A stretch of 64,000 nt of DNA from Callorhinchus milii (GCF_018977255.1 NW_024704758.1:5704001-5768000); one strand, 5' to 3'. Positions 2,871 through 49,100 are shown, counted from the first letter of the stretch. A program made the numbers and translations. The notes: generated by a model not told the origin, from the letters alone.

Positions 2871-5800
2871 CTAAATCAAAGGAAATTTCAATATATTAAT
2901 CACCCAAACAACACATTGTAATCCACAAACAGATCTCAAACAACTTCTGTTTCACATTATGAGAGAAACTCTTCTTTTATCAACAAATCTACTGAGCAAG
3001 AGATGTGTGTGAGTATGTGTGTTGTGTTTCTGTGTGTGTATGTGTGATTATGTGTGTGTGGATGTGAAAAATTAAGCAAGTGGGTGAAAATATGTGAGTT
3101 TGATAGATTGAATAAGTGGGTGACAGAGAGGGAGAGTGATTGACATTGTGTGTGAGTATGTGAGCGAGGGAATGTGTATGAGCGATAGAGTTGATGGCTG
3201 AGAAACAGATCATGGCTGAGTGACAAAGATAATGAGTGACAAATGGAGTGAGTGAGCAAGCGAGCGACAGAGATCGTGAGTAAGTAAGAGTAGATTTATG
3301 AGTGTGTTTCCACATCGTAAGAATTGTGGAAGACAGAAAGATGCAGAAATTATAAGCTATCTCTGACATTGTGCCTGCAATGTCAATGAATAAAGCACAA
3401 CTTCACACACAGCATATCCATTGGAGAGTTTTCTCATTGATTTCCAGGATTGTATAAACCCTTAGTCTTGTCAGAATCATTAGCTGAACACTGTGGAGCG
3501 ATGCGTGAGAGATGGCAAGGACATCGCTCAGAGGGAGAACTTACCTGTAACTTGTAATGTTACAGACTCAATAAGAGGCTCTTGGAGGGCCTCATGGACA
3601 ACCTCAACCATTAATTCAGCTCCGTCATCCTTAGAGGGGTCAGCACACATCGAAACACTGCAGTTTACACTGAACATCCCATTATTCTTCCGCACATAGT
3701 GGGGCATCACAGCAGTGAAGGAGCCATCTTCCTCACAGCCCTCTGTGACATTTTCAAGGGGAACACTGGCCGTCTTAGCTTCCTGTGGTTCCCCGTCTTT
3801 CTTTGGGATCCTCCAATGAAAGACTTTCTTTTTCTCCTGCTCCCCTTTCCTCTTCACGTAGGTAACAATGGAGATGGCCCGTGGGCTGAAGCCAACAACT
3901 GCCCAGCTCAGGCTGGCCAGCTCCCCGGGCGTGATCTCAGAGGGTTTCTTGATTTCAGTGATTGTGGGAGGAACTAGAAAACAATAATGTGTGTTAAATG
4001 GACGCTATAGTGTAATTCTATAACATGCTTCAGTTTGACAAACGCTCATTCAAAATTATATCCAGAGCGACAACCCATAAATAATCACTCAATACTGCAG
4101 AGGACACCAGACAAGTGCTGGAGAAAGGGGATAAGCTGCATTTTTATATATCATCAAAAACCACAACCTTAGGCATACCTGTACTTCGTTATATCAGCAT
4201 TTGCATGTATTCATCGTACAACTACGCACTTCGGAACACATGTCAACACACATACATGAATGCAGCTCTTACCTCCTGTAACATGTAATGTCATAGTTGT
4301 AGTGAGAGGAATCTTAAGAGCCTTGTGATTCACTTCGACAATTAGCTCAGCTCTATCATCCCTGCACATATCAGCAGTTATCCAAATGCTGCAGTTTACA
4401 CTGAATGTCCCATTGTTCTTCCTCACACAGTGGGGTGTCACAGAAGTGATGGCGTCATCTTCTTCACAGCGATCCCTCACGTCTGTGAGAGCAGTGCTCC
4501 CCATCTTTGCTTCGTCATCTATTCCTCCCTTCTCTGGGATACGCCAGTGAAACAGCCTCTTCTCTTTCAGCTCCCCTTTCCTCTTCAGCAAGAAAACAAT
4601 GGAAATGGGCTTTGGAGTGAACCCGGTGACTGACCAACTCAGACGGGCCACTTCACTATGTTTAATCTCGGGACGCAAGTCAATTTCAGTCACCGTAGGA
4701 GCAACTATAAAACAGACATAAACGGGTAAGGCTGGTATTAATGAACACTCAAGAAACATGCTATAGAATTCCTAGAGACTTCAGCCAAATGGGACCCCAC
4801 AATGTGCATTCGGATAACTGCTGGCAAATGGTCTTCTCAGTTAATACTGGTTGTGAATCCAGGAGTTATCCGAATGCACACTTCTCTCTGGACACCACAC
4901 TGATAGCAGAACCTACCTCCAGGAACTTGTAATTTTATTCTCTCAATGCAAGTGTCACGGTCATTGAGAGCCTCGTGCTTAACCTGAACAGTTAATTCAG
5001 CTTCATTATCCGTGGACGCATCAGGAGTCACGGTGATGCTGCACATTACTCTGAAGGTTCCGTCTTTGTGTTTGTCTTGTTCACATTTGGGCACCTGAGC
5101 AGTGAATGAGGCATCTTTATTGCGTCCATCTGATAGGTCTTTGAGAGAAAAGGCACTTGTCTTCCCTTCAAATGTTTTCTTATCTTGAGCTTCCCAATGA
5201 AACAGTTGCCTTATTTGCTCTCCTTTCCTCTGTACACTGGAAATAATCGACATTTTCCCAGGAGTGAACCCAGTCACTGCCCATTGCAGCTCGGTTTTCT
5301 CACCGTGTTTAATTTCCTTGGGCTTGGACTCAATTGCAGTAATTTTAGGAGGAACTACAAAACAAAATGACAAACCTGATTTAAACATTCTAGTCTTTTT
5401 CTGTGTGAGACACAAATCAAATACACGGAAACAAGTGAAAAGCCTGCACATCATGGCAGAGGGCACGAGGCTGAAGCTGTTGAATAATGTTAAACTCCGT
5501 CATAAGCTCACAGTCTGTCTGAGCCTCCAGTAATCTGCAAGTGCTGCTCCCATATAGGGAGCACACAGTCATTTTGACAAATAATTAATTTAAAGTTCTA
5601 CATTTTATCCCAACTGAATACAAGAGAAATGAAGAGAAAAAGTGGGAATGAAGGACAAAGAGAGACAGGAAGAGAGGGAGAGATCTTCACACAGAGGGAG
5701 AGACATAGACAATGGGAGACACTCCCTTTTCTTTTCGATGGTGCTGTGGGATTTTTAACATTTAGCTGATATTAACATTCTAGTTATCCCAATGCACACT

Positions 5801-8800: not shown

Positions 8801-11800
8801 TTTAACTGAAAGTTGTGTGTGAGAAAACTGACTTTCAGGAGACAAGAGCTAATTTCCCTCACAGGCCTTTGTCCATTCCCCAACCGTAAAAAGCTGACAT
8901 ATCTCACAGATACTGTTTCCTTGCTTATAATGCCTATAAGCAATGTGAGTCACTTTAAAGCATGGTAGTTTGTAATTCTCACATTGCTTCACGCACAATT
9001 TATAATCTAAATCTTTAGCAAAGTTTCAGAAAGAGCTTCACACTATTACAGAGAACAGCAGACAATGCTGCAGACTGATGCTGAGCGGGACCATGACCAC
9101 AGAGTCTCATCACTTCTCCATCAACCTACAACAGAGCGACCCCCAAACACAACTACAACTAATCCTGCAAAATGTACACACTGTAATATTGTTACTCAGA
9201 GTACTTATGTCCTCTGCATAGTGTGTTGACAGCATTGAGGCTGTTCCTTCCCAGCTGCAAAGACGTGACCCTTGGATGAGATGTTAAACCAAAGTCTTGT
9301 TTGCCTGTTCAGTTGGGCATTAAAGATCCTGTGGCACTATTCAAAAAGAGAAGGGAGTTCTCCCGGTGTCCTGACCAACAATCGCCCTCAAAAANTTGAT
9401 TCACCGCTTTGGCTCTTTGTGAGACATTGCTGTGTGCAATTGTGCTGCCACATTTGCCTAAAAATACGCAGTCACTCCATTTCACAGTAAATCTTGTGAA
9501 GCACTTTGAGATGGTCCTCCAGACATAAGGCATTGTACCAAAATGCAAGGATTATTATTTTAGTCCTGTAGCATATTGGTTAGAGTTGACGTGTATCAAG
9601 CAACAGGACTCGGATTCAATTCTCGTACAGTGCAAAATCTAAATTTCCTTACGCCACACACCTGTTTACTTAGCAGTATGTGGTTGTTGATGGTGGATTG
9701 AGGATCACTTTCCAGCGTTAATAATCCCTCCAAAAAAATAATAATAATAATTTGGTCACTCAATCCACGATATTTGTGGGACACTGCTGTGAGTAATTGG
9801 CAACCGCATTTCAAATCTATTTCTGTGTCAAACAGAAACTGGAAACCAAATCCACAGAAACGAGTGAAAAGCCTGCACGTCATGGCAAAAGGCACCAGGC
9901 TGGAACTGTATATCTATATCAAAACGCAAGGATTATTATTATTATTATTTATATCCTCTGCACGGTGTGCATAAAGGCTGTTACTTTCCAGCTGCAAAGA
10001 TCTGATCTGCCCAATATCGTGAAGGTGAGAGATGTCCACAGTGCTGATCAGGAGATGAGCTTTGCTCATTTCATCTATTAATTACCAGGGTTTCTCATGT
10101 CTCAGCCAAGACAGTCAATGTGGGCAGACGATTCACACACAGAGACCAAATGGAGGAGCACAGCTACTGCCCCACCTCAGCTGAGTGCACCTGGGGGGAG
10201 GGGGNAAGCGTTGGTGGGCAGGGTCTCCACTGAGATGAGCTGGCTACAAGATGCTAATAATCTTTATAATCCTTGCAACTGATATAACACCTTAGCACGT
10301 CATCCAGACGTCTCATAGCGCTTCAAGGATTTTAAAGTGAAGTACATTGACTGTGTATTTGAAGGGAGAATGTGTCAGTCAATTTGCACACAGCAGTGTT
10401 CCACAAACAGCCATGAAGTAAGTGATGCATTTTATTTGGGAGATTGTTGGCCAGGACATGGGGACAAACTCCCTTCTCTTTTTGAACAGCTTGAGAACGG
10501 AATATTGGAATCCAGTCAATCCTCTGGAACAGTCTTGGAAGTTAAGTTCCCGATCCAAGTGGCTTCACAACAATCCAGAGCACTGCTGATTATACACCAG
10601 CAGCCTGGCTCGTCGACAGGCCTCAGACAGGAAGACCAGTGACTGGAATCAGGGATTCTACCCACTCAGATCTTGGTAATCCTGAAAGCCAAAGCCTTAA
10701 CAAGTAGCGCAGTCCTACCTGGAAACAGCAAGCTCTGTGCGTTTCCCTTTTTAAGCTCCAGCAGTATCCCAGTGCACACTCAGTGGTCCCCAAGCCATGC
10801 GTCTTGCCAACCTGCACCAAATACTCTCTGGTATTAGGTAAGTAGGATGCATAACTACTGTGAGCGTTCCATTCTAAACACGGGGAAGTTTCCATGCGTA
10901 ACTGGCATATATGAACCGTCTGGTTTGGATATCCTGAAGCACAGTGACGGGTTTTCTCAAATGCCAGACACCCGGCTGCCCAAAATAAACAGATCAGTGA
11001 CCAGAGCAGCACGGAGCCAGCGACATTCTGACCAGAGAGGCTCAGGGCTTCACTGAATGGGGACCTCAGTCGCTGGATCATCGGGAAGGAAACTGTTACT
11101 TTATCCTAAATATTGTCACAGAGCACGTGGTACAGAGAGGACACAATACTGATGGCTGAACCTACCTCCAGCAATGTTTATTCCGAAATGCTCAGTGAAA
11201 GGCACAGGCAATGCCTCATGATTAACCTGAACAATTAAAACAGCTCCATCATCCGTGGCCTCATGAGGAGTCATAACGATTCTGTAATTTACTCTGAAGG
11301 TTCCGTCTTTGGTGTCAGGTTCACATTTGGGCACCTCAGCAGTGAAGGCGGCATCTTTACTGTTTCTGTCTGATCGGTCCTCAAGAGGAAAGGATTTTGT
11401 TGAACTTCGAAATGCTTTCTTATTTGGAATTTCCCAGTGAAACAGTTGTCTTAGTGGCTGTTCTTTCCTCTGTAGACTGTAAACAATCGAGATGGTCCCA
11501 GGAGTAAACCCAGTCACTGCACATTGCAGCTCAGCTCTCTCACCATGTGTCATTTTCCTGGGTTTCGGAATTGTAATTTTAGGAGGAACTACAAAACAAA
11601 ATGACAAACCCGATGTAAACATTCAAATCTATTTCTGTGTCAACACAAACTGGAAACCAAATCCACAGAGACAAGTGAAAAGCCTGGACGTCATGGCAAA
11701 AGGCACCAGGCTGGAACTGTAGAATGGTGTTAAACTCCATCATAAGCGCACAGCCCGTCTGAGCCTCCAGTCACCTGCAAGAGCTGCTCCCAGACAGAGT

Positions 11801-14800
11801 GTACACTGTCTTTTGGGCAAATAAATAATTTAAAGTTCTACATTTTATCCCAACTGAATACAAGAGAAAGGAAGAGAGAAAGTGAGGGAAGAGGGACAGA
11901 GTGAGAGATGCACCACACACAGGGAGAGAGAGATAGAGGCACAGCACAGACTGCAGTGGCATCCGAGTGTAAGGAAAGAGTTTAACTGAAAGTCACATGT
12001 GGGGAAACTGACTTGAGCGGTACCAACTGCACCAGGCTGACACATAAACACAGCACCCAGTGAAACTGAAACAAAAATGAGTCCTGTATCATTTACATTC
12101 TGTTATATTGTTACTCTGAGAGTCTTTCGCCCACAAACATGTACAGTCAATTCACTTTACAGTACATTCTGTGAAGCGCTTTGAGACAATAATAATCCTT
12201 GCATTTGATATAGCGCCTTATCATGTCTTTGAGAGGTCTCAATGCCCTTCACAGAATATACTGCAAAGCAAATCGACTCTACTTTTTGTTGACAAAAATC
12301 GGCAGCTAATTGCGCACAGCAGTGACCCACAACAGTCGTGGTTTGAGTGACCAAATTATTATTGGGTTTTTTTCAGAAAGTATTATCCCCAGAAAAGCGA
12401 TCCGCCAATCGACTAACAAATAGGTTCCTGCTTATTGCAAGGTAAACAGAGGCTTGTGGAGTAAGGAAACCTGCTCAACATTTCAGCCAGGTCTCTCGCT
12501 TGAGTGGCAAGCGAACTAACCACTGAGCTACAGCACTTGGAGATGTCTCAACGATGTGATAAGGCGCAATATCAAAATGCAAGGATTATTATTATTATTT
12601 ATATCCTCTGCACGGTGTGCATAAAGGCTGTTACTTTCCAGCTGCAAAGATCTGATCTGCCCGATATCGTGAAGGTTAGAGATGTCCACAGTGCTGATCA
12701 GGAGATGAGCTTTGCTCATTTCATCTATTAATTACCATGTCTCAGCCCAGACAATCAATGTGGGCAGATGATTCACACACGGAGACCAAATGGAGGAGCA
12801 CAGCTACTGCCCCACCTCAGCTCAGTGCACCTGGGGGGAGGGGGGAAGCGTTGGTGGGCGGAGTCTCCTCTGAGATGAGCTGGCTACAAGATGCTAATAA
12901 TCTTTATAATCCTTGCAACTGATAAAACACCTTACCACATCATCCAGATGTCTCACAGTGCTTCAAAGGATTTTAAAGTGAAGTACAAAGACTGTGTATT
13001 TGAAGGAAGAATGTGTCAGCCAATTTGCACACAGCAGTGTTCCACAAACAGCCGTGAAGTAAGTGATGCATTTTATTTGGGGGATTGTTGGCCAGGACAT
13101 GGGGACAAACTCCCTTCTCTTTTTGAACAGCTTGAGAACGGAATATTGGAATCCAGTCAATCTTCTGGAACAGTCTTGGAAGTTAAGTTCCCGATCCAAG
13201 TGGCTTCACAACAATCCAGAGCACTGCTGATTATAAACCAGCAGCCTGGCTCGTCGACAGGCCTCAGACAGGAAGACCAGTGACTGGAATCAGGGATTCT
13301 ACCCACTCAGATCTTGGTAATCCTGAAAGCCAAAGCCTTAACAAGTAGTGCAGTCCTACCTGGAAACAGCAAGCTATGTGCGTTTCCCTTGTTAAGCTCC
13401 AGCAGTATCCCAGCGCACACTCAATGGTCCCCAAGCCTTGCGTCTTGCCAACCTGCACCAAATACTCTCTGGTATTAGGTAAGTAGGCTGCATAACCACT
13501 GTGAGCGTTCCATTCTAAACACGGTGAAGTTTCCATATGTAAACTATCTGGTTTGGATACCCTGAAGCACGGTGACGGGTTTTCTCAAATGCCAGACACC
13601 CGGCTGTCCAAAATAAACAGATCAGTGACCAGAGCTGCACATAGCCAGCGACTTTCTGACCAGAGAGGCTCAGGGCTTCACTGAATGGGGACCTCAGTCG
13701 CTGGATCATCGGGAAGGAAACTGTTACTTTATCCTAAATATTGTCACAGAGCACATGGTGCAGAGAGGACACAATACTGATGGCTGAACCTACCTCCAGC
13801 AATGTTTATTCCGAAATGCTCAGTGAAAGGCACTGGCAATGCCTCATGATTAACCTGAACAATTAAAACAGCTCCATCATCCGTGGCCTCATGAGGAGTC
13901 ATAACGATTCTGTAATTTACTCTGAAGGTTCCGTCTTTGGTGTCAGGTTCACATTTGGGCACCTCAGCAGTGATGGCGGCATCTTTATTGTTTCTATCTG
14001 ATTTGTCTTCAAGATGAAAGGATTTTGTTGAACTTCGAAATGCTTTCTTATTTGGAATTTCCCAGTGAAACAGTTGTCTTAGTGGCTGTTCTTTCCTCTG
14101 TAGACTGGAAACAATCGATATCGTCCCAGGAGTGAACCCAGTCACTGCACATTGCAGCTCAGCTCTCTCACCATGTGTCATTTTCCTGGGTTTCGGAATT
14201 GTAATTTTAGGAGGAACTACAAAACAAAATGACAAACCCGATGTAAACATTCAAATCTATTTCTGTGTCAAACACAAACTGGAAACCAAATCCACAGAAA
14301 CCAGTGAAAAGCCTGGACGTCATGGCAGAGGGCCCCAGGCTGGAGCTTTAGAATGATGTTAAACTCCATCATAAGCGCACAGCCCGTCTGAGCCTCCAGT
14401 AACCTGCAAGAGCTGCTCCCGCACAGGGTGCACTGTCCTTTCGACAAATAAATAATTTAAAGTTCTCCATTTTATCCCAACTGAATACAAGAGAAAGGAA
14501 GAGAGAAAGTGAGGGAAGAGGGACATAGAGTGATGCAAAACACAGGGAGTGAAAGATTGAGGCCCAGTACAGACTGCAGTGGCATCCTAGTGTAAGGAAA
14601 GAGTTTAACTGAAAGTTATGTGTGAGGAAAACGACTTTCAGGAGACATGAGCTAATTTATCTCACAGATGTTGATTTTCTTCACTCCCTGACCTTAAAAA
14701 GCTGACTTATCTTCAATGACCCTCCTCTTTGACCATGTTTTGAATCACCTTGCTTCTCCCGCCTGCCCTCTACCCTCCCCAATCCTGACCCCCAGCTCAG

Positions 14801-17800: not shown

Positions 17801-20800
17801 CCTTTTAGTTGCTTGCTGAGCTGCCTCCCTGTGTCCAATACCCGTGCCCTCTGCCCGTACCCTCTGCCCGTGCCCTCTGCCCGTGTCCTCTCCTCAGGGC
17901 CCTCTCCCCAGGGCCTCTTCCACTGACTTCCAGTGTGACAGCATGTGACGAGTTCTCAGGCTGCTCTAAACTGACATCTAGGAGCTTCCATGTTACTCCT
18001 GATGACATGATCCAAAGTATAAAAGTGGTATGGACACAAACGGTCTCTCTGTGTTTTTATGTCTCCTCACACTCTCTGTCTGTTTCCCCCCACAATCTAC
18101 TTTCGTCTCTCTCCAAAGCTGAGAGAGAGAGAAAGAATAATACAGAGCGAAAGAGAGAGCAACACACAGTGAGAGTTACAGAGAGAGTTAGGTGGCGTCT
18201 ATATTGCTCGGGGTGAAGGGGAAGTTCTCAGATTCCAATTGAAACACTCACAACCTTCTGACCCAAAGGCGAGTGTTACCAACTGAGTCAATCTGTCACC
18301 TGAACTCACAGGGTTAATGGAGCATAAAATATGTCACGAGGTAACTATCCGAGCTGAGACAGTAACAATGTTCCAGGTGATTTGAAGAAGTGTTGAAGCA
18401 GCATGTCAATACGATCGGGTAAGAGAGAAGAGTAGGATGAGAGGAGATAGCTCGAGTGGAGGAATGAGCAACAGTATAGGTGTAACAAAAACAGAGAGAG
18501 CTGGGAAAACTCAGCAGGTCAGGTAGCATCTATGGAGAAAGGAAAGTGAGTCAACGTTTCGGGTCCATGACTCTTCGTCAGAACGAAACGTTGACTCACT
18601 TTCCTTTCTCCATAGATGCTGCCTGACCTGCTGAGTTTTCCCAGCTCTCTCTGTTTCTGTTTCAGTTTCCAGCATCTGCAGTATTTTGTGTTTTGACCAG
18701 TATAGGTGTGATGGGGTGAAAGGCCCTCTGTGCTGTAATTATAATGATAATGATAATAATTCTTGCATTTGATGTAACGCCTTATCACATTGTTGAGACG
18801 TCTCAAAGCCCTCCACAGAATACACCGTAAAATGTATTGACTATATTTTATGGGCAAAACGCAGCAGCCAATTTCACACAGTAGTCGTGGATTGAGTGAC
18901 CAAATTAGTTTTATTTTTTGTTGTTGGAAGGGATTATTAACCCTGGATTTCTATGATTCTATATATTCCGAATGTTTGAACACCGACATGTAGGTGTTGC
19001 TGGGCGGGGGTGGGGGGATAGAGGTTGCACAATGCAATTCTTACCTTCAACTTCGAATTTACAGATTTTTCGAGAGACGTTTTCAGAGTCTTGTGATGAA
19101 CTTTTACAGTCATTTGAGCTCCGTCGTCCTCAGATACATCAGGACAGAATCCTATCAGACACTTTACACTGAAGGTCCCATTTTCGAGTTGAACACATCG
19201 TGGGGGCTCAGCAGTGAAGGAATTCACCCTCTCACATCCATCTTTTATATCTACGATGGGAACACCTTCTTCAATCTGACATGACACATTTTCATCCTTT
19301 GTGAAGTTCCAGACAAATAACTTCAGTTGTTCTTTTCTTTTTCTCGTCAGTAATACCACAATCTCTATCTCTTTTGGTTTGAATCCAGTAACTTCCCAAC
19401 TCAGATCGGCACGCTGCCCATGTATAAAGCGAGCGGGTTTGTGGATTTCAGTGATCTTGGGAGGAGCTGTGAAACGTACAAAACTTAGAATCAAATATTC
19501 TAATTCTCTAAAGATACCGGCGTAATGATCACCACATTTATAACAAGAATTTGCCCTTATATGCCACCTTGCCAACATTGATACTTTCTCAAAGCACTTT
19601 ACAGGAACTTTACAGTGTCCATCACTGAGCAAAGGGGCAAGAGAAAGCAGGGGAATGGTGACAGTGACCAAAAGCACAATCAAGCAGGTAAGTTTTTAGA
19701 AGGGATTTGGGTAAGCATTCCAGAGAGCGGAGGCCTAGACACAGCCTTTCGCTATGTCATTAGCACAATATCTGTTTCAGTTGATCATTGTGTCGGCTGA
19801 TAGTTCTCTGTTGAGAGAAAATGTGCACAAGAGCATTTAATGTTCAATAATTCACCGCCACATTTGCCATTGTACTTTAGGACTGTGAAGATCCTTACCT
19901 TGATTCCATTTCTTCCAAAAGCCAAATGCCGCTACAGCAAGGAGCACAATCACCAGCAGGCCAACGACACCTCCAATAACAGCTCCAGGCCCATTTCCTG
20001 CAGGTTCCTGTGGTTTCTTAACTACCACAGTCAGCTCTGCCTCCAGTGTAAAATTATCACTGAATGCTCTGTGCTTCACCACACATCTGTACCGATTACC
20101 ATCGTCATCCAGGGTTGGTCTGATATTCAACTTGCTGGAAACACTGAATGTTCTGTCACTGTTGTGAGCTACAATTTGTGTGATGATTCCTGTTGTAATC
20201 TCCGTCTCCACACCACGCGATACCTTGACCCAGCGGATCCCGTGAGTCTTTGGGTAAAATCTATTAACATCACATGTCAAAGCACCTTCCGAACCATTGT
20301 TGATTGTGAAGTGACGTTTAGACAAGGTAACCTTTGGCTTAGCTGTAGAGATCACAAAATTGCCCTCTATTAATATTCTCTTTGAAGCAGCATTTTTATC
20401 TTCTACAAACAACATACACACCACTGACAACTCGTATTTACTCCAGCCTCAGCAACAGGAAGCTGGGAATTCCACCTTGTCTTTAGAAATCCCTGAGTGG
20501 AATCTGGAGGACAATATCATGGAATAATAATATTATAACAATCCTTGCATTTGATAGAGCACCTCACCATGTTATTGAGATGCCTCATAGAATGTTACAG
20601 GCCAGAAACAGGCCAGTCACCCATCAAATCTGCATTGCTGTTTTACTTCCTATCACCATGACCCACCTAATGACACTTTCCAGATCACTCCCTCAATATT
20701 CCTCTTTTTCAGTGCTTGGGTTGCTACCTTGTTCAAGGGGCACTATGTAATTGCAAACTGTTGTTGTTTTTCAAGCACCTAATCCCCCTTTAGAAAGAAT

Positions 20801-27120: not shown

Positions 27121-27134
27121 TTAATTCCCACCGT
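27121..27134 (-). CDS. B terminal coding exon (DGGN-stop)
   Basis: Acceptor tttcctttggtttag, same coding sequence as 2857-2870. Confidence 0.6.
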
Positions 27135-30100: not shown

Positions 30101-32868
30101 ACTGATCCGAGGAGGAACTAAAAGGGAATTCAAACAAAATGGAATAAGACATTTCAAGTTTCTCCCATGCAATATTGGGTTCTAATTTGCAGTATTCACA
30201 GTAGTAAGACACCATTTGGTTATTGGAAGGAGTTCATATTCACTCAGTTTCCTTCTTAAGGAACCCTGTTGGAAATCAACTTATGTTCGGCCTCCATATG
30301 CCTTTATGTGGGAGTCCGGTTGTTTGTAGCAACAGATATTACACAACCGTTTCAATGTCAAATAACTGACTCTTACCTCCTTCTTTCTCGGTCCCTTCAG
30401 TTTGCTTCCTACAGCAACAGAAAAGTGCCAAATTAAGCAACACAATCAACGATATGACACTGATGCCTCCAACAATTTGTGGTAGTACAGTAGGTTCCTC
30501 CACAGTCAGCTTTGCCTCCAGTGCAATATTATCATTGAGTGTTCTGTGTGTCACGACACAGCTGTACTTATTACCATCATCATCCAGGTTTGGTTTGATC
30601 CTCAACTGGCTGGAAACTCTGAATGTTCCATCCCTGTTGGCAACTGTATACTCCGTGCTGAAATCTGATGAAATAATGTCGTTCTCACTGCCTCGCGATA
30701 CCTTGACCCAGCTGATCTGGTGATCATGAGGATAAAATCCAGTTGCTTCACATCGCAGAAAGCCCACTGAGCCATTGGTGATGAGGATTTTCTGTGGAGA
30801 CAAGCTGACCTTTGGCTGAGCTGTAGGGATTATAAAGGTTTTCTTGTAACTACATAAATCAGGCCATACATTTAAATCATAAGAGAGGTTTGGATGAAGA
30901 AGAACCTTTTGTTCATCCCTACAATAAAAACATCCTCCTACCCTCCAAGCACTTAATTTCTTAAATGGGTTGAGCTTCCTTGCCTTAACCATCTGCTGGG
31001 TAACCCAATTCAATTGTTAATGTGTGTAAAAAAAATCCTAGTGTCTGACCTCAAATTGCCCATTGCAACCCTGAAATTGTGCCCCTTTTTGCTTCTTCTT
31101 GTTGTTGTATCCCTGAACCTGTTGCCTTGTTCTCTATGAAAGCATTGCTCTCAATCCAATATAAAGTTGTATATATCTGAACAAAGTATTCCTGAAATGG
31201 GACCAGAACAAATATTGGGTTCTGTCATGTGTTTACAGAATAGCATTCCTCATTCTCACTGTTCGTTTTTTTCCCCAATCTTCTGCAACCCTAATACCCT
31301 GATTATTCCCACCGCTCTACCAATTCCAGCCCGCTTCATCCTCCTCCCTCTCACCTGCTCCGACCCACCATCAGCAGGCAATCCTTCAGATACCTTGCCC
31401 CTTCCTTCTGGAACTCTCTCCCGAAATTCCTCCGCCTCTCTCAAGTCCCGCCTGAATACCTACCTTTGTGACTGAGCTTTCAGCCATCTTGCCTCTCTCT
31501 GCTCCCCCTCCCGCCAAAACCTCACCCCACAGCTCAGGCTCCTGCTCAGTCTTTGTAAGGTTTCCTAACGTGAAAGTTTCTACATCAGTGTAAATTATTG
31601 TGCGTCTCAACAGGTGGTCGATCCAGACTCTCAGATGCTTCACAAGCACAATTCAATGTAATGCACATCTCAACAAAACAGCTATTAGGGACAAGATGCA
31701 TTTAAAAAAAAGTTACCTGACACTTGTAACAATGAGGTCTTTTCAGTTCTTTTGGATGTGCAAAATACGGTGCAGGTGTATTCTCCCTCCTCATCAAATT
31801 GCACGTTTGAAAGGAACAGCGCAGCGTTGCCAGTTCGCAGCTCGTGGACCCACGGTCTTGCTCCAGGTCGGCACGAGTGATTTGTCCTTCCATCAGAACT
31901 GCACACTAGCCTCATGTCGGTTCCATTCCTAAAGGACCACGTGACATTAACACCAGCATCGCAGCCGGACACCAAACAGGTCAGGAGCACATCTTCATTT
32001 GCCGAGGCTTCCAGCAGGCTTTCAAATATGGCAAGATCCAAGGAACCTTGGTACAAAGAACAATTAAGTTTGTTAGGATCTCCTTCAGTTTCCCCCTTTG
32101 GCAACTTCAACCCCATCCGTAGAGTATTTGTGTTTGCTGTTCTCGTATCCTATATATACTACCTCACATTCAGCAGGATTCAGTTTCAAAGACTTGATAA
32201 GGTGCTGTGTTCAAGGCGAGAACTATCAGAAATGTCCCTAAATCGCTTCCCGGGGGTAATAATCCCTTTCTTAAAAAATAATGCGGTCACACAATCAATC
32301 CACGACAGTTTGTGGGACAATGCTGTGCGCCATCGGCTTTCCGTGTTTCACCCCCAAAATCCACTTTACAATGTTTTCCGTGAAGCGCTTTGAGGCGTCT
32401 CAAAAGACGTGAGAGGGCGCGATATCAAATGCAAGATTGTTGGCACATTTTGTAGGACCTCCACAGCAATCACCTCCCGGAGCTCAGGAGATGGCAGTAC
32501 CGCACTTACAAACAGTGCAACAAGCTTTTAGGGTGAGAACCAATGGTGACAAGAAGCCCAATGTAACACTACTATTAACATTAATATTATTAATATTATT
32601 ATCATTATTATTATCATTGGAGCATCAGAAAATCCCCTGAAACACAGCCGCCCCCCACCCACGATCACTGCCGGGAGTCTGAGCGTGTGATTTCGCACAA
32701 TAGCGAAAGGCGGATTTTTTCCCCGAGCTGAGGGTTACGGTGCAGACAGAGGGCGGAGACCACCGACCGCCCTCCGGGGACGCGCTTTGCCGTACCTGCC
32801 GGTGAGACCAGACACCCCAGCAACAGGCTCAGGGCTGCGGGCGGCCACAGCACACGCAGCCCCTCCAT
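27121..32868 (-). CDS. NCR3LG1: Gene B: complete B7-H6/NCR3LG1-like receptor, signal-IgV-IgC1/TM plus 3 post-TM Ig-C1-like domains, 717 aa predicted (multi-exon span)
   Basis: Exons of 73+330+444+432+432+429+14 = 2154 nt join in frame from ATG to TAA using canonical splice sites. Confidence 0.75.
27808..28236 (-). CDS. B post-TM Ig-like exon 3
   Basis: 429 nt, phase 1-1, paralogue of 3545-3973. Confidence 0.87.
28537..28968 (-). CDS. B post-TM Ig-like exon 2
   Basis: 432 nt, phase 1-1, paralogue of 4273-4704. Confidence 0.87.
29686..30117 (-). CDS. B post-TM Ig-like exon 1
   Basis: 432 nt, phase 1-1; VPPRISEL..MNWEVSGFTP..GSFSVKC..DDGAEVTLEVNH. Confidence 0.87.
30377..30820 (-). CDS. B IgC1 + transmembrane exon
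   Basis: 444 nt; LRCEATGFYP..ISW..TFRVSSQL..YSCVVTH, then TM IVGGISVISLIVLLNLALF followed by CCCRK. Confidence 0.92.
31270..31495 (+). mobile_element. L2 3' fragment
   Basis: Pyrimidine-rich L2 ORF2 end (..WNSLP..KSRLNTYL-like). Confidence 0.6.
31717..32046 (-). CDS. B IgV exon (extra cysteines)
   Basis: 330 nt, phase 1-1; LLTCLVSGC..VTW..GNAALFL..EEGEYTCTVFC. Confidence 0.9.
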
Positions 32869-35199: not shown

Positions 35200-35523
35200 A
35201 AATAATAATATAGTAATAATCCTTGCATTTGATATAGCGCTTTTCACGTCGGGAGGACGTCCCAAAGCGCTTCACAGAACACACTGTAAAGTGAATTGAC
35301 TGTATATTAGTGGGCGAACGCAGCAGCCAATTGCGCACAGCAATGTCCCACAAACAGTCGTAGATTGAAAATGACCAATTTAATTATTGTTTTTGTTTTT
35401 TGGAGGGATTATTATTAGGCGTGTGGAGTAAGGAAACTTGCCCAAGGTTTCGCCCTCTGCCTGGAATTGAACTCAGGTCCTTCGCTTGCAACGCGAGTAC
35501 TCTAACCACTGAGCTACAGGACT
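35200..35523 (-). mobile_element. Full-length tRNA-derived SINE with L2-type tail
   Basis: Head AGTCCTGTAGCTCAGTGGTTAGAG (A box) ... GAGTTCAATTCC (B box), central domain, tail ...GCGCTATATCAAATGCAAGGATTATT. Confidence 0.85.
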
Positions 35524-37102: not shown

Positions 37103-37149
37103 TCACAAACCATCCATCTGGCGGCTGGAAGATTGAACATTTCCACCTC
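37103..37149 (-). CDS. A2 terminal coding exon (GGGNVQSSSRQMDGL-stop)
   Basis: Acceptor tttcctttggtttag, phase 1, TGA; flanks homologous to 2150-2950. Confidence 0.65.
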
Positions 37150-40100
37150 CTAAACCAAAGGAAATTTCAATAGATTAATCACAAAAACAGCACATTTCAG
37201 TCCAACAAACACCTCATCATAACTTGTAAGTATTAAAAAAAAAGTTTGCTTCATTTAACAAAGTGACTGTGGAGAACTGGAAGACAGCAAGTAGGATAGG
37301 TAGTTACGTGGACAAGGATTGTAGCTCTGAGCAGATGGTGAGGCCTCTTCATTTGACTCCCACTGTGTTGTGTTTGGCGAGATGCTGATTCACCTGTGGA
37401 GACAAATTTCAGAGAAAGTTATTGCTCAGAAAGGGTTATTATTGGGACAAACATATTTATATACTTAACATCCATGAAGTGAATTATACCCATGGTGCTG
37501 ATCGGGAGGTGAGCTTTGTTTATATTCTTTATTAATTACCAGGGTTTCTCATGTCTCAGTCCAGACAGTTCATACACACAGGGCCCCAGAGACCAAATGG
37601 AGCAGCACAGCTACTGCCCCCAGGTCAGCTCAGATCATCTCAGACCAGAACTCGAACCTAAGATCTTCTGACCTGAGAAGCTCAACACTGTTCTGAGCAG
37701 TGACTTCAGCTGCTGGGCCATCGGGGAGCAAATCATTACAATATCCTAAACATTGTCACAGAGCACGAGAGACAGAGAGGACACCTACCTCCCGTAACGT
37801 GTAATTTTAACTTCTCAATGAGAGGTTCACAAACACCAAGAGCCTCGTGCTGAACCTGAACAGTTAATTCAGCTTCATTATGCCTGGACACGTCAGGAGT
37901 CACGGTGATGCTGCACTTTACTCTGAAGGTTCCGTCTTTGTCTTTTTCACATTTGGGCACCTGAGCAGCGAACGAGGCATCTTTATTGCGTCCATCTGAT
38001 AGGTGTTTGAGAGAAAAGGCACTTCCCTTCCCTTCAAATGTTTTCTTATCTTGAGCTTCCCAATGAAACAGTTGCCTAATTTGCTCTCCATTCCTCTGTA
38101 GACTGGAAATAATCGACATTTTCCCAGGAGTGAACCCAGTCACTGCCCATTGCAGCTCGGTTTTCTCACCGTGTTTAATTTCCTTGGGCTTGGACTCAAT
38201 TGTAGTAATTTTAGGAGGAACTACAAAACAAAATGACAAACCTGATGTAAACATTCTAGTCTTTTTCTGCGTGAGACACAAACCAAATACACGGAAACAA
38301 GTGAAAAGCCTGGACATCGTGACAAGAGAAAGGAAGAGAAAAAGTGGGAAAGAGGGACAAAGAGAGACAGGAAGAGAGGGAGAGATCTTCACACAGAGGG
38401 AGAGACATAGACAATGGGAGACACTCCCTTTTCTTTTCGATGGTGCTGTGGGATTTTTAACATTTAGCTAAACAGTTAGGCGGGACTGTGGTTCAACAAC
38501 TGAACCAAAAGATGGCACCTCCAGCATTGCAGGGCTCCCCCAGGACACACTGCAGTGCTATCCTTGGAAAGAGTTTAACTGAAAGTTGTGTGTGAGAAAA
38601 CTGACTTTCAGGAGACAAGAGCTAATTTCCCTCACAAGCCTTTGTCCATTCCCCAACCGTAAAAAGCTGACATATCTCACAGATACTGTTTCCTTGCTTA
38701 TAATGCCTATAAGCAATGTGAGTGACCTTAAAGCATGGTTGTTTGTAACTCTCACATTGCTTCACACACAATTTATAATCTAAGTCTTCAGCAAAGCTTC
38801 AGAAACAGCTTCACACTATTAGAGAGAACAGCAGACAATGCTGCCGGCTGATGCTGAGCGGGACCATGACCACAGAGTCTCATCATTTCTCCATCAACCT
38901 ACAACAGAGCTACACCCAAACACAACTACAACCTCATCCTGTAAAATGTACACACTGTAATATTGTTACTCAGAGTACTTATATCCTCTGCACAGTGTGT
39001 TGACAGTATTGAGGCTGTTCCTTCCCAGCTGCAAAGTGCTACCACTGCTCCAGGCTGACATACAAATGGAGCAGCACAGCCACTGCCCCAGGTCAGCTCA
39101 GATCAACTCCCTGCCAACCGCACTCAAACCTTAGAGCTTTTGGCCTGAGAGGCTCAACACTGTACTGAGCAGTGACCTCAGCTGCTGGGCCATCGGGGAG
39201 CAAATCGTTACAATATCCTGAACATTGTCACAGAGCACGAGGGACAGAGAGGACACCACACTGATAGCAGAACCTACCTGGAATAATGTGCAATATTACA
39301 CTCTTCACGATAGAGGCATCAAGAGCCTCATGATGAACTTCAACAGTTAATTCAGCTCCATCATGCAAGTTTATATCAGGAATCACATTGATGATGCAAT
39401 TTACTCTGAAACTCCCATCTCCAATAGGTTCACATTTTTGCTCCTCAGCAGTGAAGGAGACAACTTGATTGTCTCTATCCGATCGGTTCTGGAGAGGAAC
39501 ATTTCTTCCTTTAAACTCTTGAAATGTTTCCTTTTTTGGAATTTCCCAGTGAAACAGTCGCACTTTTTGCTGTTGCTCTTTCCTCCTTAGACTAAAAACG
39601 ATGGCCATTGCTCCAGGAGTGAAACGAGTCACTTGACATTGCAGTGTGTCTTTCACACCATGCATAATTGGCTTGGGTAGGAAGGGTCCATTAAGTTCAG
39701 GAGGAACTGTAAAACAGAAACATGATATAAACATTGCAGCATTGCACTGGAGCGTCAGCGGGACTTGAACCCAAAACCTTCTGACACAGAGACAAGAGCG
39801 GTACCAACTGCACCAGGCTGACACATAAACACAGCACCCAGTGGAACTGAAACAAAAATGAGTCCTGTGTCATTTACATTCTGTTATATTGTTACTCTGA
39901 GTCTTTCGCCCACAAACATGTACAGTCAATTCACTTTACAGTACATTCTGTGAAGCGCTTTGAGACAATAATAATCCTTGCATTTGATATAGCGCCTTAT
40001 CATGTCTTTGAGAGGTCTCAATGCCCTTCACAGAATATGCTGCAAAGCAAATCGACTCTACTTTTTGTTGACAAAAATCGGCAGCTAATTGCGCACAGCA

Positions 40101-43100
40101 GTGACCCACAACAGTCGTGGATTGAGTGACCAAATTATTATTGGGTTTTTTTCAGAAAGTATTATCCCCAGAAAAGCGATCCGCCAATCGACTAACAAAT
40201 AGGTTCCTGCTTACTGCAAGGTAAACAGAGGCTTGTGGAGTAAGGAAACTTGCCCAACATTTCAGCCAGGTCTCTCGCTTGAGTGGCAAGCGAACTAACC
40301 ACTGAGCTACAGCACTTGGAGATGTCTCAACGATGTGATAAGGCGCCATATCAAAACGCAAGGATTATTATTATTATTTATATCCTCTGCACGGTGTGCA
40401 TAAAGGCTGTTACTTTCCAGCTGCAAAGATCTGATCTGCCCGATATCGTGAAGGTGAGAGATGTCCACAGTGCTGATCAGGAGATGAGCTTTGCTCATTT
40501 CATCTATTAATTACCATGTCTCAGCCCAGACAGTCAATGTGGGCAGACGATTCACACACGGAGACCAAATGGAGGAGCACAGCTACTGCCCCACCTCAGC
40601 TCAGTGCACCTGGGGGGAGGGGGAAGCGTTGGTGGGCGGGGTCTCCACTGAGATGAGCTGGCTACAAGATGCTAATAATCTTTATAATCCTTGCAACTGA
40701 TATAACACCTTAACATATCATCCAGACGTCTCACAGCGCTTCAAGGATTTTAAAGTGAAGTACATTGACTGTGTATTTGAAGGGAGAATGTGTCAGCCAA
40801 TTTGCACACAGCAGTGTTCCACAAACACCCATGAAGTAAGTGATGCATTTTATTTGGGAGATTGTTGGCCAGGACATGGGGACAAACTCCCTTCTCTTTT
40901 TGAACAGCTTGAGAACGGAATATTGGAATCCAGTCAATCCTCTGGAACAGTCTTGGAAGTTAAGTTCCCGATCCAAGTGGCTTCACAACAATCCAGAGCA
41001 CTGCTGATTATAAACCAGCAGCCTGGCTCGTCGACAGGCCTCAGACAGGAAGACCAGTGACTGGAATCAGGGATTCTACCCACTCAGATCTTGGTAATCC
41101 TGAAAGCCAAAGCCTTAACAAGTAGTGCAGTCCTACCTGGAAACAGCAAGCTATGTGCGTTTCCCTTGTTAAGCTCCAGCAGTATCCCAGTGCACACTCA
41201 GGGGTCCCCAAGCCGTGCGTCTTGCCAACCTGCACCAAATACTCTCTGGTATTAGGTAAGTAGGATGCATAACCACTGTGAGCGTTCCATTCTAAACACG
41301 GGGAAGTTTCCATGTGTAACTGGCATATATGAACTGTCTGGTTTGGATACCCTGAAGCACGGTGACGGGTTTTCTCAAATGCCAGACACCCGGCTGCCCA
41401 AAATAAACAGATCAGTGACCAGAGCTGCACATAGCCAGCGACTTTCTGACCGGAGAGGCTCAGGGCTTCACTGAATGGGGACCTCAGTCGCTGGATCATC
41501 GGGAAGGAAACTGTTACTTTATCCTAAATATTGTCACAGAGCACGTGGTACAGAGAGGACACAATACTGATGGCTGAACCTACCTCCAGCAATGTTTATT
41601 CTTAAATGCTCAGTGACAGGCTCAGGCAATGCCTCATGATTAACCTGAACAATTAAAACAGCTCCATCATCCGTGGCCGCATTAGGAGTCATAACGATTC
41701 TGTAATTTACTCTGAAGGTTCCATCTTTGGTGTCAGGTTCACATTTGGGCACCTCAGCAGTGAAGGCGGCATCTTTATTGTTTCTATCTGATCGGTCCTC
41801 AAGATGAAAGGATTTTGTTGAACTTCGAAATGCTTTCTTATTTGGAATTTCCCAGTGAAACAGTTGTCTTAGTGGCTGTTCTTTCCTCTGTAGACTGGAA
41901 ACAATCGATATCGTCCCAGGAGTGAACCCAGTCACTGCACATTGCAGCTCAGCTCTCTCACCATGTGTCATTTTCCTGGGTTTCGGAATTGTAATTTTAG
42001 GAGGAACTACAAAACAAAATGACAAACCCGATGTAAACATTCAAATCTATTTCTGTGTCAAACACAAACTGGAAACCAAATCCACAGAAACCAGTGAAAA
42101 GCCTGGACGTCATGGCAGAGGGCCCCAGGCTGGAGCTTTAGAATGATGTAGAATGACATTAAACTCCATCATAAGCGCACAGCCCGTCTGAGCCTCCAGT
42201 AACCTGCAAGAGCTGCTCCCAGACAGGGTGCACACTGTCCTTTCGACAAATAAATAATTTAAAGTTCTCCATTTTATCCCAACTGAATACAAGAGAAAGG
42301 AAGAGAGAAAGTGAGGGAAGAGGGACAGAGAGAGATGCAAAACACAGGGAGTGAAAGATAGAGGCCCAGTACAGACTGCAGTGGCATCCTATTGTAAGGA
42401 AAGAGTTTAACTGAAAGTTATGTGTGAGGAAAACGACTTTCAGGAGACATGAGCTAATTTATCTCACAGATAATGTTGATTTTCTTCACTCCCTGACCTC
42501 AAAAAGCTGACTTATCTTCAATGACCCTCCTCTTTGACCATGTTTTGAATCACCTTGCTTCTCCCGCCTGCCCTCCACCCTCCCCAATCCTGACCCCCAG
42601 CTCAGGTCCGAAACACTGACAGTCCAGCGCCTTGGGACATCCTCCCGACGTGAAAGGCGCTATGCAAATGTAATTTGGTTGTTGTTATCACACAGATACT
42701 GATTCTTGGTACATCTACTGCCTATGAGCAAGATCACGTGACCTTAAGGCATAGTTGTTTGTAACTTCTGCAATGTGCACTGAACCTGGGAACATGCTGT
42801 GATTTGGCACGTTTGGGGTTAAAGTTGACTCATTGCAGAAACATGCTGTGTATAAGTATGAGCTGCTAACACAAGAGTCACAGAGAGAGAGAGCGAGCGA
42901 TGAAGGAAAAGAAACTGAGAAGTAAGAGACTGCCTGAGCTCTCCCAGGGAAAGGGTAACTGATCACTGCTACTTCTCCTGAGTTAGTTACTACTTTATCA
43001 AGGAACTTAGATACTGTCCAGTATGTGTATAACCATTGACTTAAGAACTTCTGTTATAATTTTATCCCAATTGAATACAATAGAAAGGAAGAGAGAAAGT

Positions 43101-43102
43101 GG

Positions 43103-43142
<40 letters not shown>

Positions 43143-46100: not shown

Positions 46101-49100
46101 TGAGTCAACGTTTCGGGTCCATGACTCTTCGTCAGAACGAAACGTTGACTCACTTTCCTTTCTCCGTAGATGCTGCCTGACCTGCTGAGTTTTCCCAGCT
46201 CTCTCTTGTTTTTGTTTCAGATTCCAGCATCTGCAGTATTTTGTGTTTTGACCAGTATAGGTGTGATGGGGTGAATGGCCCTCTGTGCTGTAATTATAAC
46301 ATTGATCATAATTCTTGCATTTGATGTAACGCCTTATCGCACTGTTGAGACGTCTCAAAGCCCTCCACAGAATACACCGTAAAATGTATTGACTATATTT
46401 TATGGGCAAAATGCAGCAGCCAATTTCACACAGTAGTCGTGGATTGAGTGGCCAAGTTAGTATTTTTTGTTGTTGGAAGCGATTATTAACCCTGGATTTC
46501 TATGATTCTATATATTCCGAATGTTTGCACACCGACATGTAGGTGTTGCTGGGCGGGGGTGGGGGGATAGAGGTTGCACAATGCAATTCTTACCTTCAAC
46601 TTCGAATTTACAGATTTTTCGAGAGACGTTTTCAGAGTCTTGTGATGAACTTTTACAGTCATTTGAGCTCCGTCGTCCTCAGATACATCAGGACAGAATC
46701 CTATCAGACACTTTACACTGAAGGTCCCATTTTCGAGCTGAACACATCGTGGGGGCTCAGCAGTGAAGGAATTCACCCTCTCACATCCATCTTTTACATC
46801 TACGAGGGGAACACCTTCTTCAATCTGACATGACACGTTTTCATCCTTTGTGATTTTCCATACAAATAACTTCAGTTTTTGTTTTCTTTTCCTCGTCAGT
46901 AATACCACAATCTCTATCTCTTTTGGTTTGAATCCAGTAACTTCCCAACTCAGATCGGCATGCTGCCCATGTATAAAGTGAGTGGGTTTGTGGATTTCAG
47001 TGATCTTGGGAGGAGCTGTGAAACGTACAAAAAGTAGCATCAAATATTCTAATTCTCTAAAGATACCGGGGTAATGATCACCACATTTATAACAAGAATT
47101 TGCCCTTATATACCACCTTGCCAACATTGATACTTTCTCAAAGCACTTTACAGGAACTTTACAGTGTCCATCACTGAGCAAAGGGGCAAGAGAAAGCAGG
47201 GGAATGGTGACAGTGACCAAAAGCACAATCAAGCAGGTAAGTTTCTAGAAGGGATTTGGGTAAGCATTCCAGAGAGCGGAGGCCTAGACACAGCCTTTCG
47301 CTATGTCATTAGCACAATATCTGTTTCAGTTGATCATTGTGTCGGCTGATAGTTCTCTGTTGATAGAAAATGTGCACAAGAGCATTTAATGTTCAATAAT
47401 TCACCGCCACATTTGCCATTGTACTTTAGGACTGTGAAGATCCTTACCTTGAGTCCATTTCTTCCAAAAGCAAAATGCCGCTACAGCAAGGAGCACAATC
47501 ACCAGCAGGCCAACGACACCTCCAATAACAGCTCCAGGCCCATTTCCTGCAGGTTCCTGTGGTTTCTTAACTACCACAGTCAGCTCTGCCTCCAGTGTAA
47601 AATTATCACTGAATGCTCTGTGCTTCACCACACATCTGTACCGATTACCATCGTCGTCCAGGGTTGGTCTGATATTCAACTTGCTGGAAACACTGAATGT
47701 TCTGTCACTGTTGTTAACTACAATTTGTGTGATGATTCCTGTTGTAATCTCCGTCTCCACACCACGCGATACCTTGACCCAGCTGATCCCGTGAGTCTTT
47801 GGGTAAAATCTATTAACATCACATGTCAAAGCACCTTCCGAACCATTGTTGATTGTGAAGTGACGTTCAGACAAGGTAACCTTTGGCTTAGCTGTAGAGA
47901 TCACAAAATTGCCCTCTATTAATATTCTCTTTGAAGCAGCATTTTTATCTTCTACAAACAACATACACACCACTGACAACTCGTATTTACTCCAGCCTCA
48001 GCAACAGGAAGCTGGGAATTCCACCTTGTCTTTCGAAATACCTGAGTGGAATCTGGAGGACAATATCATGGAATAATATTATAACAATCCTTGCATTCGA
48101 TAGAGCACCTCACCATGTTATTGAGATGCCTCATAGAATGTTACAGGCCAGAAACAGGCCAGTCACCCATCAAATCTGCATTGCTGTTTTACTTCCTATC
48201 ACCATGACCCACCTAATGACACTTTCCAGCTCACTCCCTCAATATTCCTCTTTTTCAGTGCTTGGGTTGCTACCTTGTTCAAGGGGCACTATGTAATTGC
48301 AAACTTGTTGTTTTTTAAGCACCTAATCCCCCTTTAGAAAGAATTTACAAACTCTGCCTCAAGAATGGATAATGGCAGAGAGTTCCACATTACAGCAGCT
48401 GTTGGGTAGAGCATTCTTTCTACCCTCCCCTTCAATTCACAGAATCGTGGACATTTGCATTACAGAAAGAGGCCATTCATCCCATCGAGCCTCTCTCCAG
48501 CTTTCAGTGCAAGTCATTCATTGAATGCCACTGCCCTGTCATTTCCCCTTCAAGCCTCTCATATGATCTTCTGGAAACCCACATTGGACACTGCTTTTCA
48601 TTCTTTTTATGAGTCTTACCCCCTTACTTGGCAGGCCATTCCACATCCCAACAACTCTGAGCGAACAATGTTTGCCCAAGCTCTCTTATCACTCTTCTTA
48701 TGACACTTATAACCATACCACATAGTCACTTAACTCCCCGACTCATGGAATAGCTTTGTCCTGTTTAACCTGTCAAACCCTCTCATAATTGTGTACGTCT
48801 CTAGCATTCGTCTTGTGATTATCTTAAACCTGTATCCTCTTGTAACTGGCTCACCAACCAGTGGAAATAATACGTTACTATTTACCCTATCATAACCAGG
48901 GCCAATAGAAAATTGTGGAAATATTTGCCCAAAATTGCGGGGAAATTTTGCAAAGGCTGCGGTGGGGGGGTTGATTGGTGCTATTGAGGTACATTTTACA
49001 GGCAACCTACATTTTTTCACTTCATTGATGAAAACTAAACATGAAGAAATAACACATATTAAACTGTTGCAAAAAAAATTATTGCTTTCTTTAACAAACT

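Follow-up and report, generated by a model that had tools for sequence, protein, structure and literature searches.

Tandem immunoglobulin domains without the canonical disulfide, probably cytoplasmic, in B7-H6-like proteins of the elephant shark

C1-type immunoglobulin (Ig) domains are regarded as typical of the extracellular apparatus of adaptive immunity, namely antibodies, T-cell receptors, MHC molecules, tapasin and B7 proteins, and we know of none that has been described in the cytoplasm. A stretch of 64,000 nucleotides from the elephant shark, Callorhinchus milii (GCF_018977255.1 NW_024704758.1:5704001-5768000; hereafter the window, in whose coordinates all positions are given), bears on this point. 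It carries three genes, arranged head to tail on the minus strand, in each of which an exon encoding an IgC1 domain and a transmembrane segment is followed by further Ig-like domain exons, 19 in all. What kind of domain these exons encode, on which side of the membrane it lies and what it might do there are the questions that the locus raises. We consider it quite likely that the 19 exons are tandem copies of one ancient Ig-fold domain, forming the membrane-proximal cytoplasmic part of B7-H6-like type I proteins.

The post-membrane domains and their descent

The genes, here called C (51946 to ~37100), B (32868 to 27121) and A (24127 to 2857), have a common exon order: a leader, an IgV exon, a single exon for the IgC1 domain and the transmembrane segment, a run of post-membrane domain exons (six in C, three in B and ten in A) and a tiny terminal exon, which reads DGGN* in genes A and B (asterisks mark stop codons; Table 1). 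Comparison of the post-membrane domains with the window by tblastn returned 19 copies and no more, each on the minus strand and each where the earlier note, made from the sequence alone, had placed it. Every copy is open with both splice sites intact; an AG acceptor in phase 1 precedes 19/19, and a phase-1 donor, G/GTAAG or G/GTAGG, follows 17/19. A consensus donor in phase 1 closes the transmembrane exon, and the acceptor of the first domain exon is likewise in phase 1, so that the junction is in frame, and the same join is made in the RefSeq models that match the window exactly. Residue-for-residue matches were found to XP_042197527.1 (LOC121850342, 717 residues), XP_042197224.1 (LOC103174414, 1139 residues) and XP_042197506.1, which is named ‘natural cytotoxicity triggering receptor 3 ligand 1-like, partial’.

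Alignment of the domains bore out the signature that the earlier note had described. The C1 domains that precede the membrane retain B-strand Cys, C-strand Trp and F-strand Cys in 3/3 genes (LTC or LRC, W, and YRC or YSC). The F-strand Cys is absent from all 19 post-membrane domains, its position being taken by Val in 18 and by Leu in one, and the change of B-strand Cys to Trp, claimed for most of them, holds in 15/19; the other four (A4, A5, C4 and C5) have Cys within the motif LQC. The other common features were recovered as well: the Arg of the K/R-R-K basic patch is invariant, the LF.W or VF.W motif occurs in 19/19, and all 19 exons are 138-146 codons long. Charged residues make up ~28-30% of the modules. 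The canonical C-strand Trp has also been lost, and its place in the alignment is taken by Ser, Val, Leu, Phe or Thr. The Trp that is invariant, that of LF.W, sits in an inserted C′ strand and not at the canonical site.

In Pfam, the relationship of this domain to the C1-set (PF07654) stays below threshold: the eight post-membrane domains scanned gave 17-20.4 bits (E 7e-4 to 8e-3), under the gathering threshold of 21 bits, or no match at all, and the pre-membrane C1 domain scored 42.4 bits. Comparison with C1 profiles, which the earlier note had proposed, established homology to the C1 domain of the family itself. Aligned by hhalign with the family's own pre-membrane IgC1, the domain profile matched over its whole length with 98.2% probability (E 4.9e-14). 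In the numbering of domain A8, Trp25 corresponds to the B-strand Cys, Ser39 to the canonical Trp, Cys105 to an invariant E-strand Ser, Val123 to the F-strand Cys and His127 to the C1 His. Relative to the family C1, an insert of ~35 residues lies between strands C and D and forms the C′ strand with the invariant Trp. Against PDB sequences, the top 60 rows were all C1-type constant-domain proteins (best E 1.5e-6), including Ig constant regions, MHC class II beta2, SIRP-alpha and beta2-microglobulin; these matches were partial, covering strands A-C and E-G. The domain thus resembles the C1-set in GF.P after strand B, in V.H..L of strands F-G, in DGTF at the start of strand E and in its phase-1 exon boundaries, and differs from it in having neither the B-F disulfide nor the canonical C-strand Trp, in its insert and C′ strand where the Pfam family has a seven-strand C-type topology, and in its place after the membrane. 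The profile comparisons indicate that the post-membrane domain descends from C1 domains, with homology over strands A-G.

The structure prediction that had been suggested was made with AlphaFold2 on A8, using an alignment of 44 sequences, and gave a confident Ig sandwich (predicted local distance difference test, pLDDT, 94.5; predicted template-modelling score, pTM, 0.88). Its strands are A, B (21-30), C (35-42), C′ (49-56, bearing the LF.W Trp), D (90-93), E (101-109), F (120-127) and G (136-141), with short additional elements between C and D beside C′. As modelled, the domain is an Ig sandwich of C1 descent, without a disulfide and with a number of strands like that of V domains.

Searched against 1.84 billion representatives, a profile of the 19 domains matched 361 proteins (E<=1e-3). 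Architecture was counted in the first 150 representatives, of which 72 have a full-length domain. A transmembrane segment lies upstream only in 57 of these and downstream in none, and 15, mostly fragments, have no such segment; in the 57 proteins having both, the gap between segment and domain has a median of 10 residues. The search across proteomes that the earlier note had called for therefore never found the domain N-terminal to a transmembrane segment (0/57). The same order, signal peptide-IgV-IgC1-transmembrane segment-domain, recurs in these 57 proteins, which come from many species. The members with species names belong, among fish, to sharks, rays, chimaera, coelacanth, lungfish, sturgeon and bichir and, among tetrapods, to caecilians, salamanders, frogs, turtles, gharial, snakes and one lizard; no mammal, bird or teleost was present among the ~70 named matches. 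The proteins are annotated as ‘uncharacterized’ or auto-named NCR3LG1, butyrophilin-like or hemicentin-like. The genes thus have annotations but no characterisation, and the domain lacks both a separate Pfam family and an annotated name. The searchable literature yielded no account of Ig domains in the cytoplasmic tails of B7-H6-like proteins, though one may exist.

Across the family, the F-strand position is occupied by Val, Ile or Leu, and the C′ Trp and E-strand Cys show wide conservation. On strand B, bony vertebrates mostly have Cys and the amplified copies of cartilaginous fish have Trp. At the canonical Trp position, Trp is present in 19/101 family domains, a number close to the 16 canonical domains of a second type, with F-strand Cys, that passed the score cut-off; the other domains have Leu, Val, Phe, Thr, Ile or Ala. 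This distribution indicates that the domain is an ancient type and that loss of the F-strand Cys was one ancestral event. The count of 19 losses in 19 domains given by the earlier note is therefore correct, but it records one old event and not 19 independent ones, because the loss is common to homologues in other vertebrate classes and the exons were duplicated recently.

‘Long’ members of the family have the post-membrane domain once, directly after the transmembrane segment, and then several domains that Pfam calls C1-set. One such member is coelacanth XP_014340773.1, and another is Callorhinchus LOC103174895, located on the 15.6-Mb scaffold that also contains the window; UniProt V9K7L7, the entry for the long Callorhinchus paralogue, is presumably derived from cDNA. 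In Heterodontus francisci XP_067902348.1 (P0001), seven near-identical copies are separated by acidic linkers of ~25 residues (GKTIPKEIEDDSDRSLLENVPDSER), and the elephant-shark genes have no linkers between domain copies. Since only the Heterodontus copies have linkers, amplification appears to have occurred independently in the two lineages.

Ectodomain, membrane topology and cysteines

Among solved structures, the best relative of the ectodomain is human B7-H6 (E 2.5e-23), followed by CD276 (1.5e-15) and TAPBPR (1.2e-12). Assignment of the ectodomain to tapasin or TAPBPR was rejected, B7-H6 scoring far better. B7-H6 (NCR3LG1; PDB 3PV6, 4ZSO, 6YJP) is the ligand of the natural killer (NK) receptor NKp30. 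It has the same signal peptide-IgV-IgC1-single transmembrane architecture, and several family members have been auto-named NCR3LG1 by NCBI. The two differ after the membrane, where human B7-H6 has a cytoplasmic tail that contains signalling motifs and is not of Ig type, and the elephant-shark proteins have 3-10 Ig modules.

On which side of the membrane do these modules lie? The family proteins have a signal peptide and a single strongly hydrophobic segment; a Kyte-Doolittle scan (19-residue window, threshold at least 1.9) detected no later hydrophobic segment that could serve as a second transmembrane segment. Net charge, totalled over 79 family proteins, comes to -41 for the ten residues on the N side of the segment and to +156 for the ten on its C side, in agreement with the positive-inside rule. 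N-x-S/T sequons, compared with composition-preserving shuffles, are enriched 1.6-fold before the membrane segment (247 observed, 156 expected), whereas after it they show no enrichment (266 observed, 266.3 expected). These features and the splice phases indicate that the post-membrane domains are probably cytoplasmic.

The earlier note had reached the same topology and had taken the missing disulfide, as the expected consequence of a reducing cytosol, for independent support. The topology is upheld by the evidence just given, but the disulfide argument is weak, both because loss of the F-strand Cys was one ancestral event and because most other C1 domains found after the membrane keep their cysteines. 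In the long paralogues (P0009, P0012, P0018 etc.), 172/213 of these other post-membrane C1 domains have both cysteines and the canonical Trp. At least one Cys is lacking in 41/213, and in one orthologous later domain the F-strand Cys is consistently replaced by Phe; pre-membrane C1 domains keep both cysteines in 67/67. Comparison of 41/213 with 0/67 points to a partial relaxation of the cysteines after the membrane, and this adds a further, independent line to the case for a cytoplasmic location.

The frequent D- and E-strand cysteines noted earlier were also found. D-strand Cys is present in 13/19 domains and E-strand Cys in 16/19, but the two occur together in 10/19 and only one of them in 9/19, and the total number of cysteines is odd in 13/19. 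An obligatory pair, whether a disulfide or a shared metal site, is unlikely because the two do not co-occur and counts are often odd; for the same reasons, the suggestion that the retained Cys and His residues bind metal or are modified finds no support. With the predicted strand limits, and with the register assumed, D-strand Cys91 would pair with position 103 and not with Cys105. Family-wide, D-strand Cys occurs in 3/101 domains, almost only in Callorhinchus members, and E-strand Cys in 84% of domains of the post-membrane type. The latter is equally frequent whether the B-strand residue is Cys (45/54), Trp (18/21) or Phe (7/8). From strand alternation and the alignment to the C1 Ser, we infer that the E-strand Cys faces inward beside the former disulfide site. 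Most simply, it would be a buried free thiol in a re-packed core; it might also be a redox-sensitive or modified site.

Exon duplication, competing explanations and possible role

The 19 copies represent ~9 exon types, the remainder having arisen by recent duplication (2-4% nucleotide divergence). A 3.4-kb segmental duplication of 98% identity relates 129-3545 to 24401-27808. In genes A and B alike it takes in the region of the last domain exon, the DGGN* exon and the flank downstream, and homology extends upstream across exons A9/A10 and B2/B3. This comparison indicates that the 3′ end of gene A is a recent copy of that of gene B, or vice versa.

The first domain exons of genes A and C present a frame problem. 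Their 3′ ends (19045-19065 and 46594-46614, minus strand) read TCTGTAAATTCGAAGTTGAAG and are followed by the intron start GTAAGA, with a homopolymer 1 nt shorter than in in-frame relatives. The final five codons of A1 and C1 are thereby frame-shifted, the window reading GTAAATTCG where a paralogue (P0209) has ...SVKFEVE and a model from an older assembly (P0011) has ...SVNFEVEG. Spliced to A2 as assembled, A1 gives ...NSKLK FLPQ*, with a stop four codons into the next exon. Because the A1 donor is in phase 0 as assembled and leads to this stop in exon 2, gene A is represented at NCBI by two models, a partial one for its 5′ part and another for its 3′ part. The 1-nt difference is identical in genes A and C, and may be real or an assembly error. 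Gene B, with three domains, is a clean, uninterrupted model.

Several of these observations weigh against our reading of the 19 exons as cytoplasmic Ig modules. The gene models are predictions, V9K7L7 presumably excepted, and as assembled, translation of exons A2-A10 and C2-C6 would require either skipping of exon 1 or an error in the assembly. The ratio of non-synonymous to synonymous substitution (dN/dS) between recent exon copies of the window is near 1, which does not demonstrate present constraint on single domain copies; it could reflect relaxed selection, diversifying selection or too few changes to distinguish these. The closest solved folds returned by Foldseek are V domains (nanobodies), with a template-modelling score of only ~0.5, because of the C-D insert. 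Finally, retention of the cysteine pair and canonical Trp in 172/213 of the later post-membrane C1 domains fits oxidised, extracellular domains, and chiefly because of it our confidence in the topology can rise no higher than likely. The same retention would be expected if the post-membrane domains were lumenal or extracellular, through an unusual topology, processing or release, with the B-F bond replaced by a non-canonical disulfide or a metal site, and many domains of the window do carry three to five cysteines on or near the D-E hairpin. We regard this as improbable, in view of the signal peptide and exactly one hydrophobic segment, with basic residues after it and no later segment, and of sequons that are enriched before the membrane and at expectation beyond it. 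The cysteines themselves offer the rival little, being inconsistently paired, often odd in number, out of register across the D and E strands (register assumed) and, in strand E, present regardless of the B-strand residue.

The dN/dS value, the early stop that follows the A1/C1 frameshift as assembled and the division of gene A by NCBI would also fit a history of decay, in which the extra exons are relaxed or non-functional duplicates whose cysteines were lost through the absence of selection. We rate this as similarly improbable. All 19 exons have stayed open with both splice sites, the same substitutions and motifs are conserved from sharks to reptiles, the fold is predicted at high pLDDT and gene B is uninterrupted; moreover, P0011, of the same exon type, and P0209 are in frame, and the homopolymer difference may lie in the assembly. 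It is more doubtful still, and in our view very improbable, that the join between membrane and domains is an artefact of gene modelling, the B7-H6-like genes ending at their transmembrane exon and the domain exons belonging to a separate gene. Retention of the following intron would indeed give gene B a plausible short tail, ...FDIETVV*, but the transmembrane exon has a consensus phase-1 donor, the next exon is in phase 1 without a leader or start codon of its own, and the same domain order, with its short median gap, recurs in the 57 representatives.

We think it likely, then, that these are type I proteins with a B7-H6-like head outside the cell and a string of disulfide-free, charged Ig modules inside. 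Tandem duplication has multiplied a phase-1/phase-1 domain exon in the elephant shark and, under this explanation, the domains would fold in the cytoplasm without any disulfide, their core re-packed by Trp or Cys in strand B, Val, Ile or Leu in strand F and Cys in strand E. The head would be displayed on the cell surface to an NKp30-like receptor, and the tail of 3-10 charged Ig modules would form an intracellular scaffold that links the ligand to cytoplasmic partners. That the Ig string is a protein-binding scaffold is a tentative proposal, to which we give somewhat less than an even chance. An intracellular sensor or adaptor with inside-out control, as proposed by analogy with B30.2 in butyrophilins, seems unlikely; such an array would bind a stress-derived, pathogen-derived or cytoskeletal partner and thereby control the display or conformation of the head. 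The intracellular domain of BTN3A1 senses a ligand and signals inside-out.

Butyrophilins and chicken BG proteins resemble the elephant-shark proteins in joining a B7-superfamily head to a large cytoplasmic module, folded or extended; the analogy is functional only, the module here being an Ig array and not a B30.2 domain or coiled coil. Titin, obscurin, MyBP-C and filamin provide the parallel of cytosolic Ig sandwiches without a structural disulfide, arranged as tandem scaffold arrays. Their domains are of I-set or filamin type in soluble cytoskeletal proteins, whereas the elephant-shark domain is C1-derived and tethered to an immune-ligand-like membrane head. If the topology is true, the domain would be a natural constant-type Ig fold re-engineered to fold without a disulfide, useful for intrabody design, and a new kind of cytoplasmic module in the B7/butyrophilin superfamily; it would also raise the question of how, in cold-blooded vertebrates, molecules resembling NK ligands are connected to the cell interior.

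Exon coordinates and other features of the window

The exons of the three genes are listed in Table 1. For the 3′ ends, read-through of the last domain exon to a stop (GKFCL* or GKFSL*) was considered and rejected; RefSeq splices to a 5-codon DGGN* exon, which was found in the window. A secreted isoform made from an internal donor before the membrane segment was likewise rejected, the IgC1 domain and the transmembrane segment being encoded by one exon in which the sole GT is weak and in the wrong phase.

Table 1. Exons of genes C, B and A and copies of an interspersed repeat in the window
Feature	Position	Strand	Basis
Gene C leader (signal peptide) exon	51878..51946	-	exact peptide match to RefSeq leader MSAPGGASEGTTLLLILWVSIAG; tblastn
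Gene C IgV exon, approximate, codon-aligned	50036..50377	-	tblastn of P0212, 91% identity; Pfam V-set on gene A copy
Gene C IgC1 + transmembrane exon, LTC..W..YRC then transmembrane segment, donor CAA G/GTAAG phase 1	47449..47892	-	codon listing
C1 post-membrane domain exon, type 1, 141 residues, donor phase 0 as assembled	46594..47016	-	tblastn, alignment
C2 post-membrane domain exon, 138 residues	45008..45421	-	tblastn, alignment
C3 post-membrane domain exon, 141 residues	43754..44176	-	tblastn, alignment
C4 post-membrane domain exon, 141 residues, retains B-strand Cys	41585..42007	-	alignment
C5 post-membrane domain exon, 143 residues, retains B-strand Cys	39279..39707	-	alignment
C6 post-membrane domain exon, 144 residues	37790..38221	-	tblastn, alignment
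Gene C terminal exon, candidate start (tttag/GAGGTGGAAAT...)	37110..37149	-	only similarity to A and B terminal exons
Gene B leader exon	32794..32868	-	P0002 residues 1-25, exact
Gene B IgV exon	31718..32044	-	P0002 residues 26-134, exact
Gene B IgC1 + transmembrane exon, LRC..W..YSC, transmembrane segment, donor GGA G/GTAAG phase 1	30378..30821	-	codon listing
B1 post-membrane domain exon, 144 residues, Leu at F-strand position	29687..30118	-	alignment
B2 post-membrane domain exon, 143 residues	28538..28966	-	alignment
B3 post-membrane domain exon, 143 residues	27809..28237	-	alignment
Gene B terminal mini-exon, ..DGGN*	27121..27135	-	P0002 C-terminus match
Gene A leader exon	24059..24127	-	tblastn
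Gene A IgV exon	22435..22776	-	Pfam V-set E 1.5e-7; exact match P0212
Gene A IgC1 + transmembrane exon	19900..20343	-	Pfam C1-set E 8.8e-11; codon listing; exact match P0212
A1 post-membrane domain exon, type 1, 141 residues, donor phase 0 as assembled	19045..19467	-	alignment
A2 post-membrane domain exon, 138 residues	17225..17638	-	tblastn, alignment
A3 post-membrane domain exon, 141 residues	15941..16363	-	alignment
A4 post-membrane domain exon, 141 residues, retains B-strand Cys	13795..14217	-	alignment
A5 post-membrane domain exon, 141 residues, retains B-strand Cys	11167..11589	-	alignment
A6 post-membrane domain exon, 146 residues	7847..8284	-	alignment
A7 post-membrane domain exon, 146 residues	5836..6273	-	alignment
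A8 post-membrane domain exon, 146 residues; domain used for AlphaFold2 model	4918..5355	-	alignment
A9 post-membrane domain exon, 143 residues, vs B2: 3/429 nt and 3/143 residues differ	4274..4702	-	
A10 post-membrane domain exon, 143 residues, near-copy of B3	3546..3974	-	
Gene A terminal mini-exon, ..DGGN*	2857..2871	-	P0211 C-terminus match
Short interspersed repeat, copies	1-262, 35201-35361, 24413-24535, 12188-12313, 39967-40092, 18738-18879, 46284-46431, 58717-58842	both	

Retention of the intron after the transmembrane exon of gene B (30339-30420, minus strand) would lead to the end ...GGKSQLFDIETVV*, a short tail with a C-terminus like that of a class I PDZ ligand, and a short isoform of gene B arising in this way is possible. 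In genes A and C, read-through past the transmembrane exon ends in ...QWQMWR*.

Among the non-coding features, an intronic repeat is present in three copies (10337-11081, 12891-13536 and 40755-41499), just downstream of exons of the A4/A5/C4 type. Its open reading frames (ORFs) are long and overlap on both strands (MKYIDCVFEGRMCQ... on the plus strand, METSPCLEWNAHS... on the minus strand), with no Pfam match; the repeat probably either belongs to the unit that was duplicated or represents an old mobile element. The short interspersed repeat of Table 1, ~130-260 bp in length, has many copies in both orientations and forms an inverted pair at the start of the window. A Pfam scan of the other long ORFs, those of the intronic repeats and of the region 52-64 kb, gave no match. 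Within that region, at 62173-63249 on the minus strand, two adjacent ORFs resemble the C-terminal part of the reverse transcriptase of a long interspersed nuclear element (one contains ...TSRLDYGNALL...), with no Pfam match above threshold. Microsatellite-like low-complexity tracts lie in introns and flanks (2957-3369, 27221-27523, 21400-21850 and 48935-49453) and give rise to His/Thr/Ser/Arg-rich ORFs on both strands. Single-base Ns occur at 9395, 10205 and 21840, all outside the exons described here.

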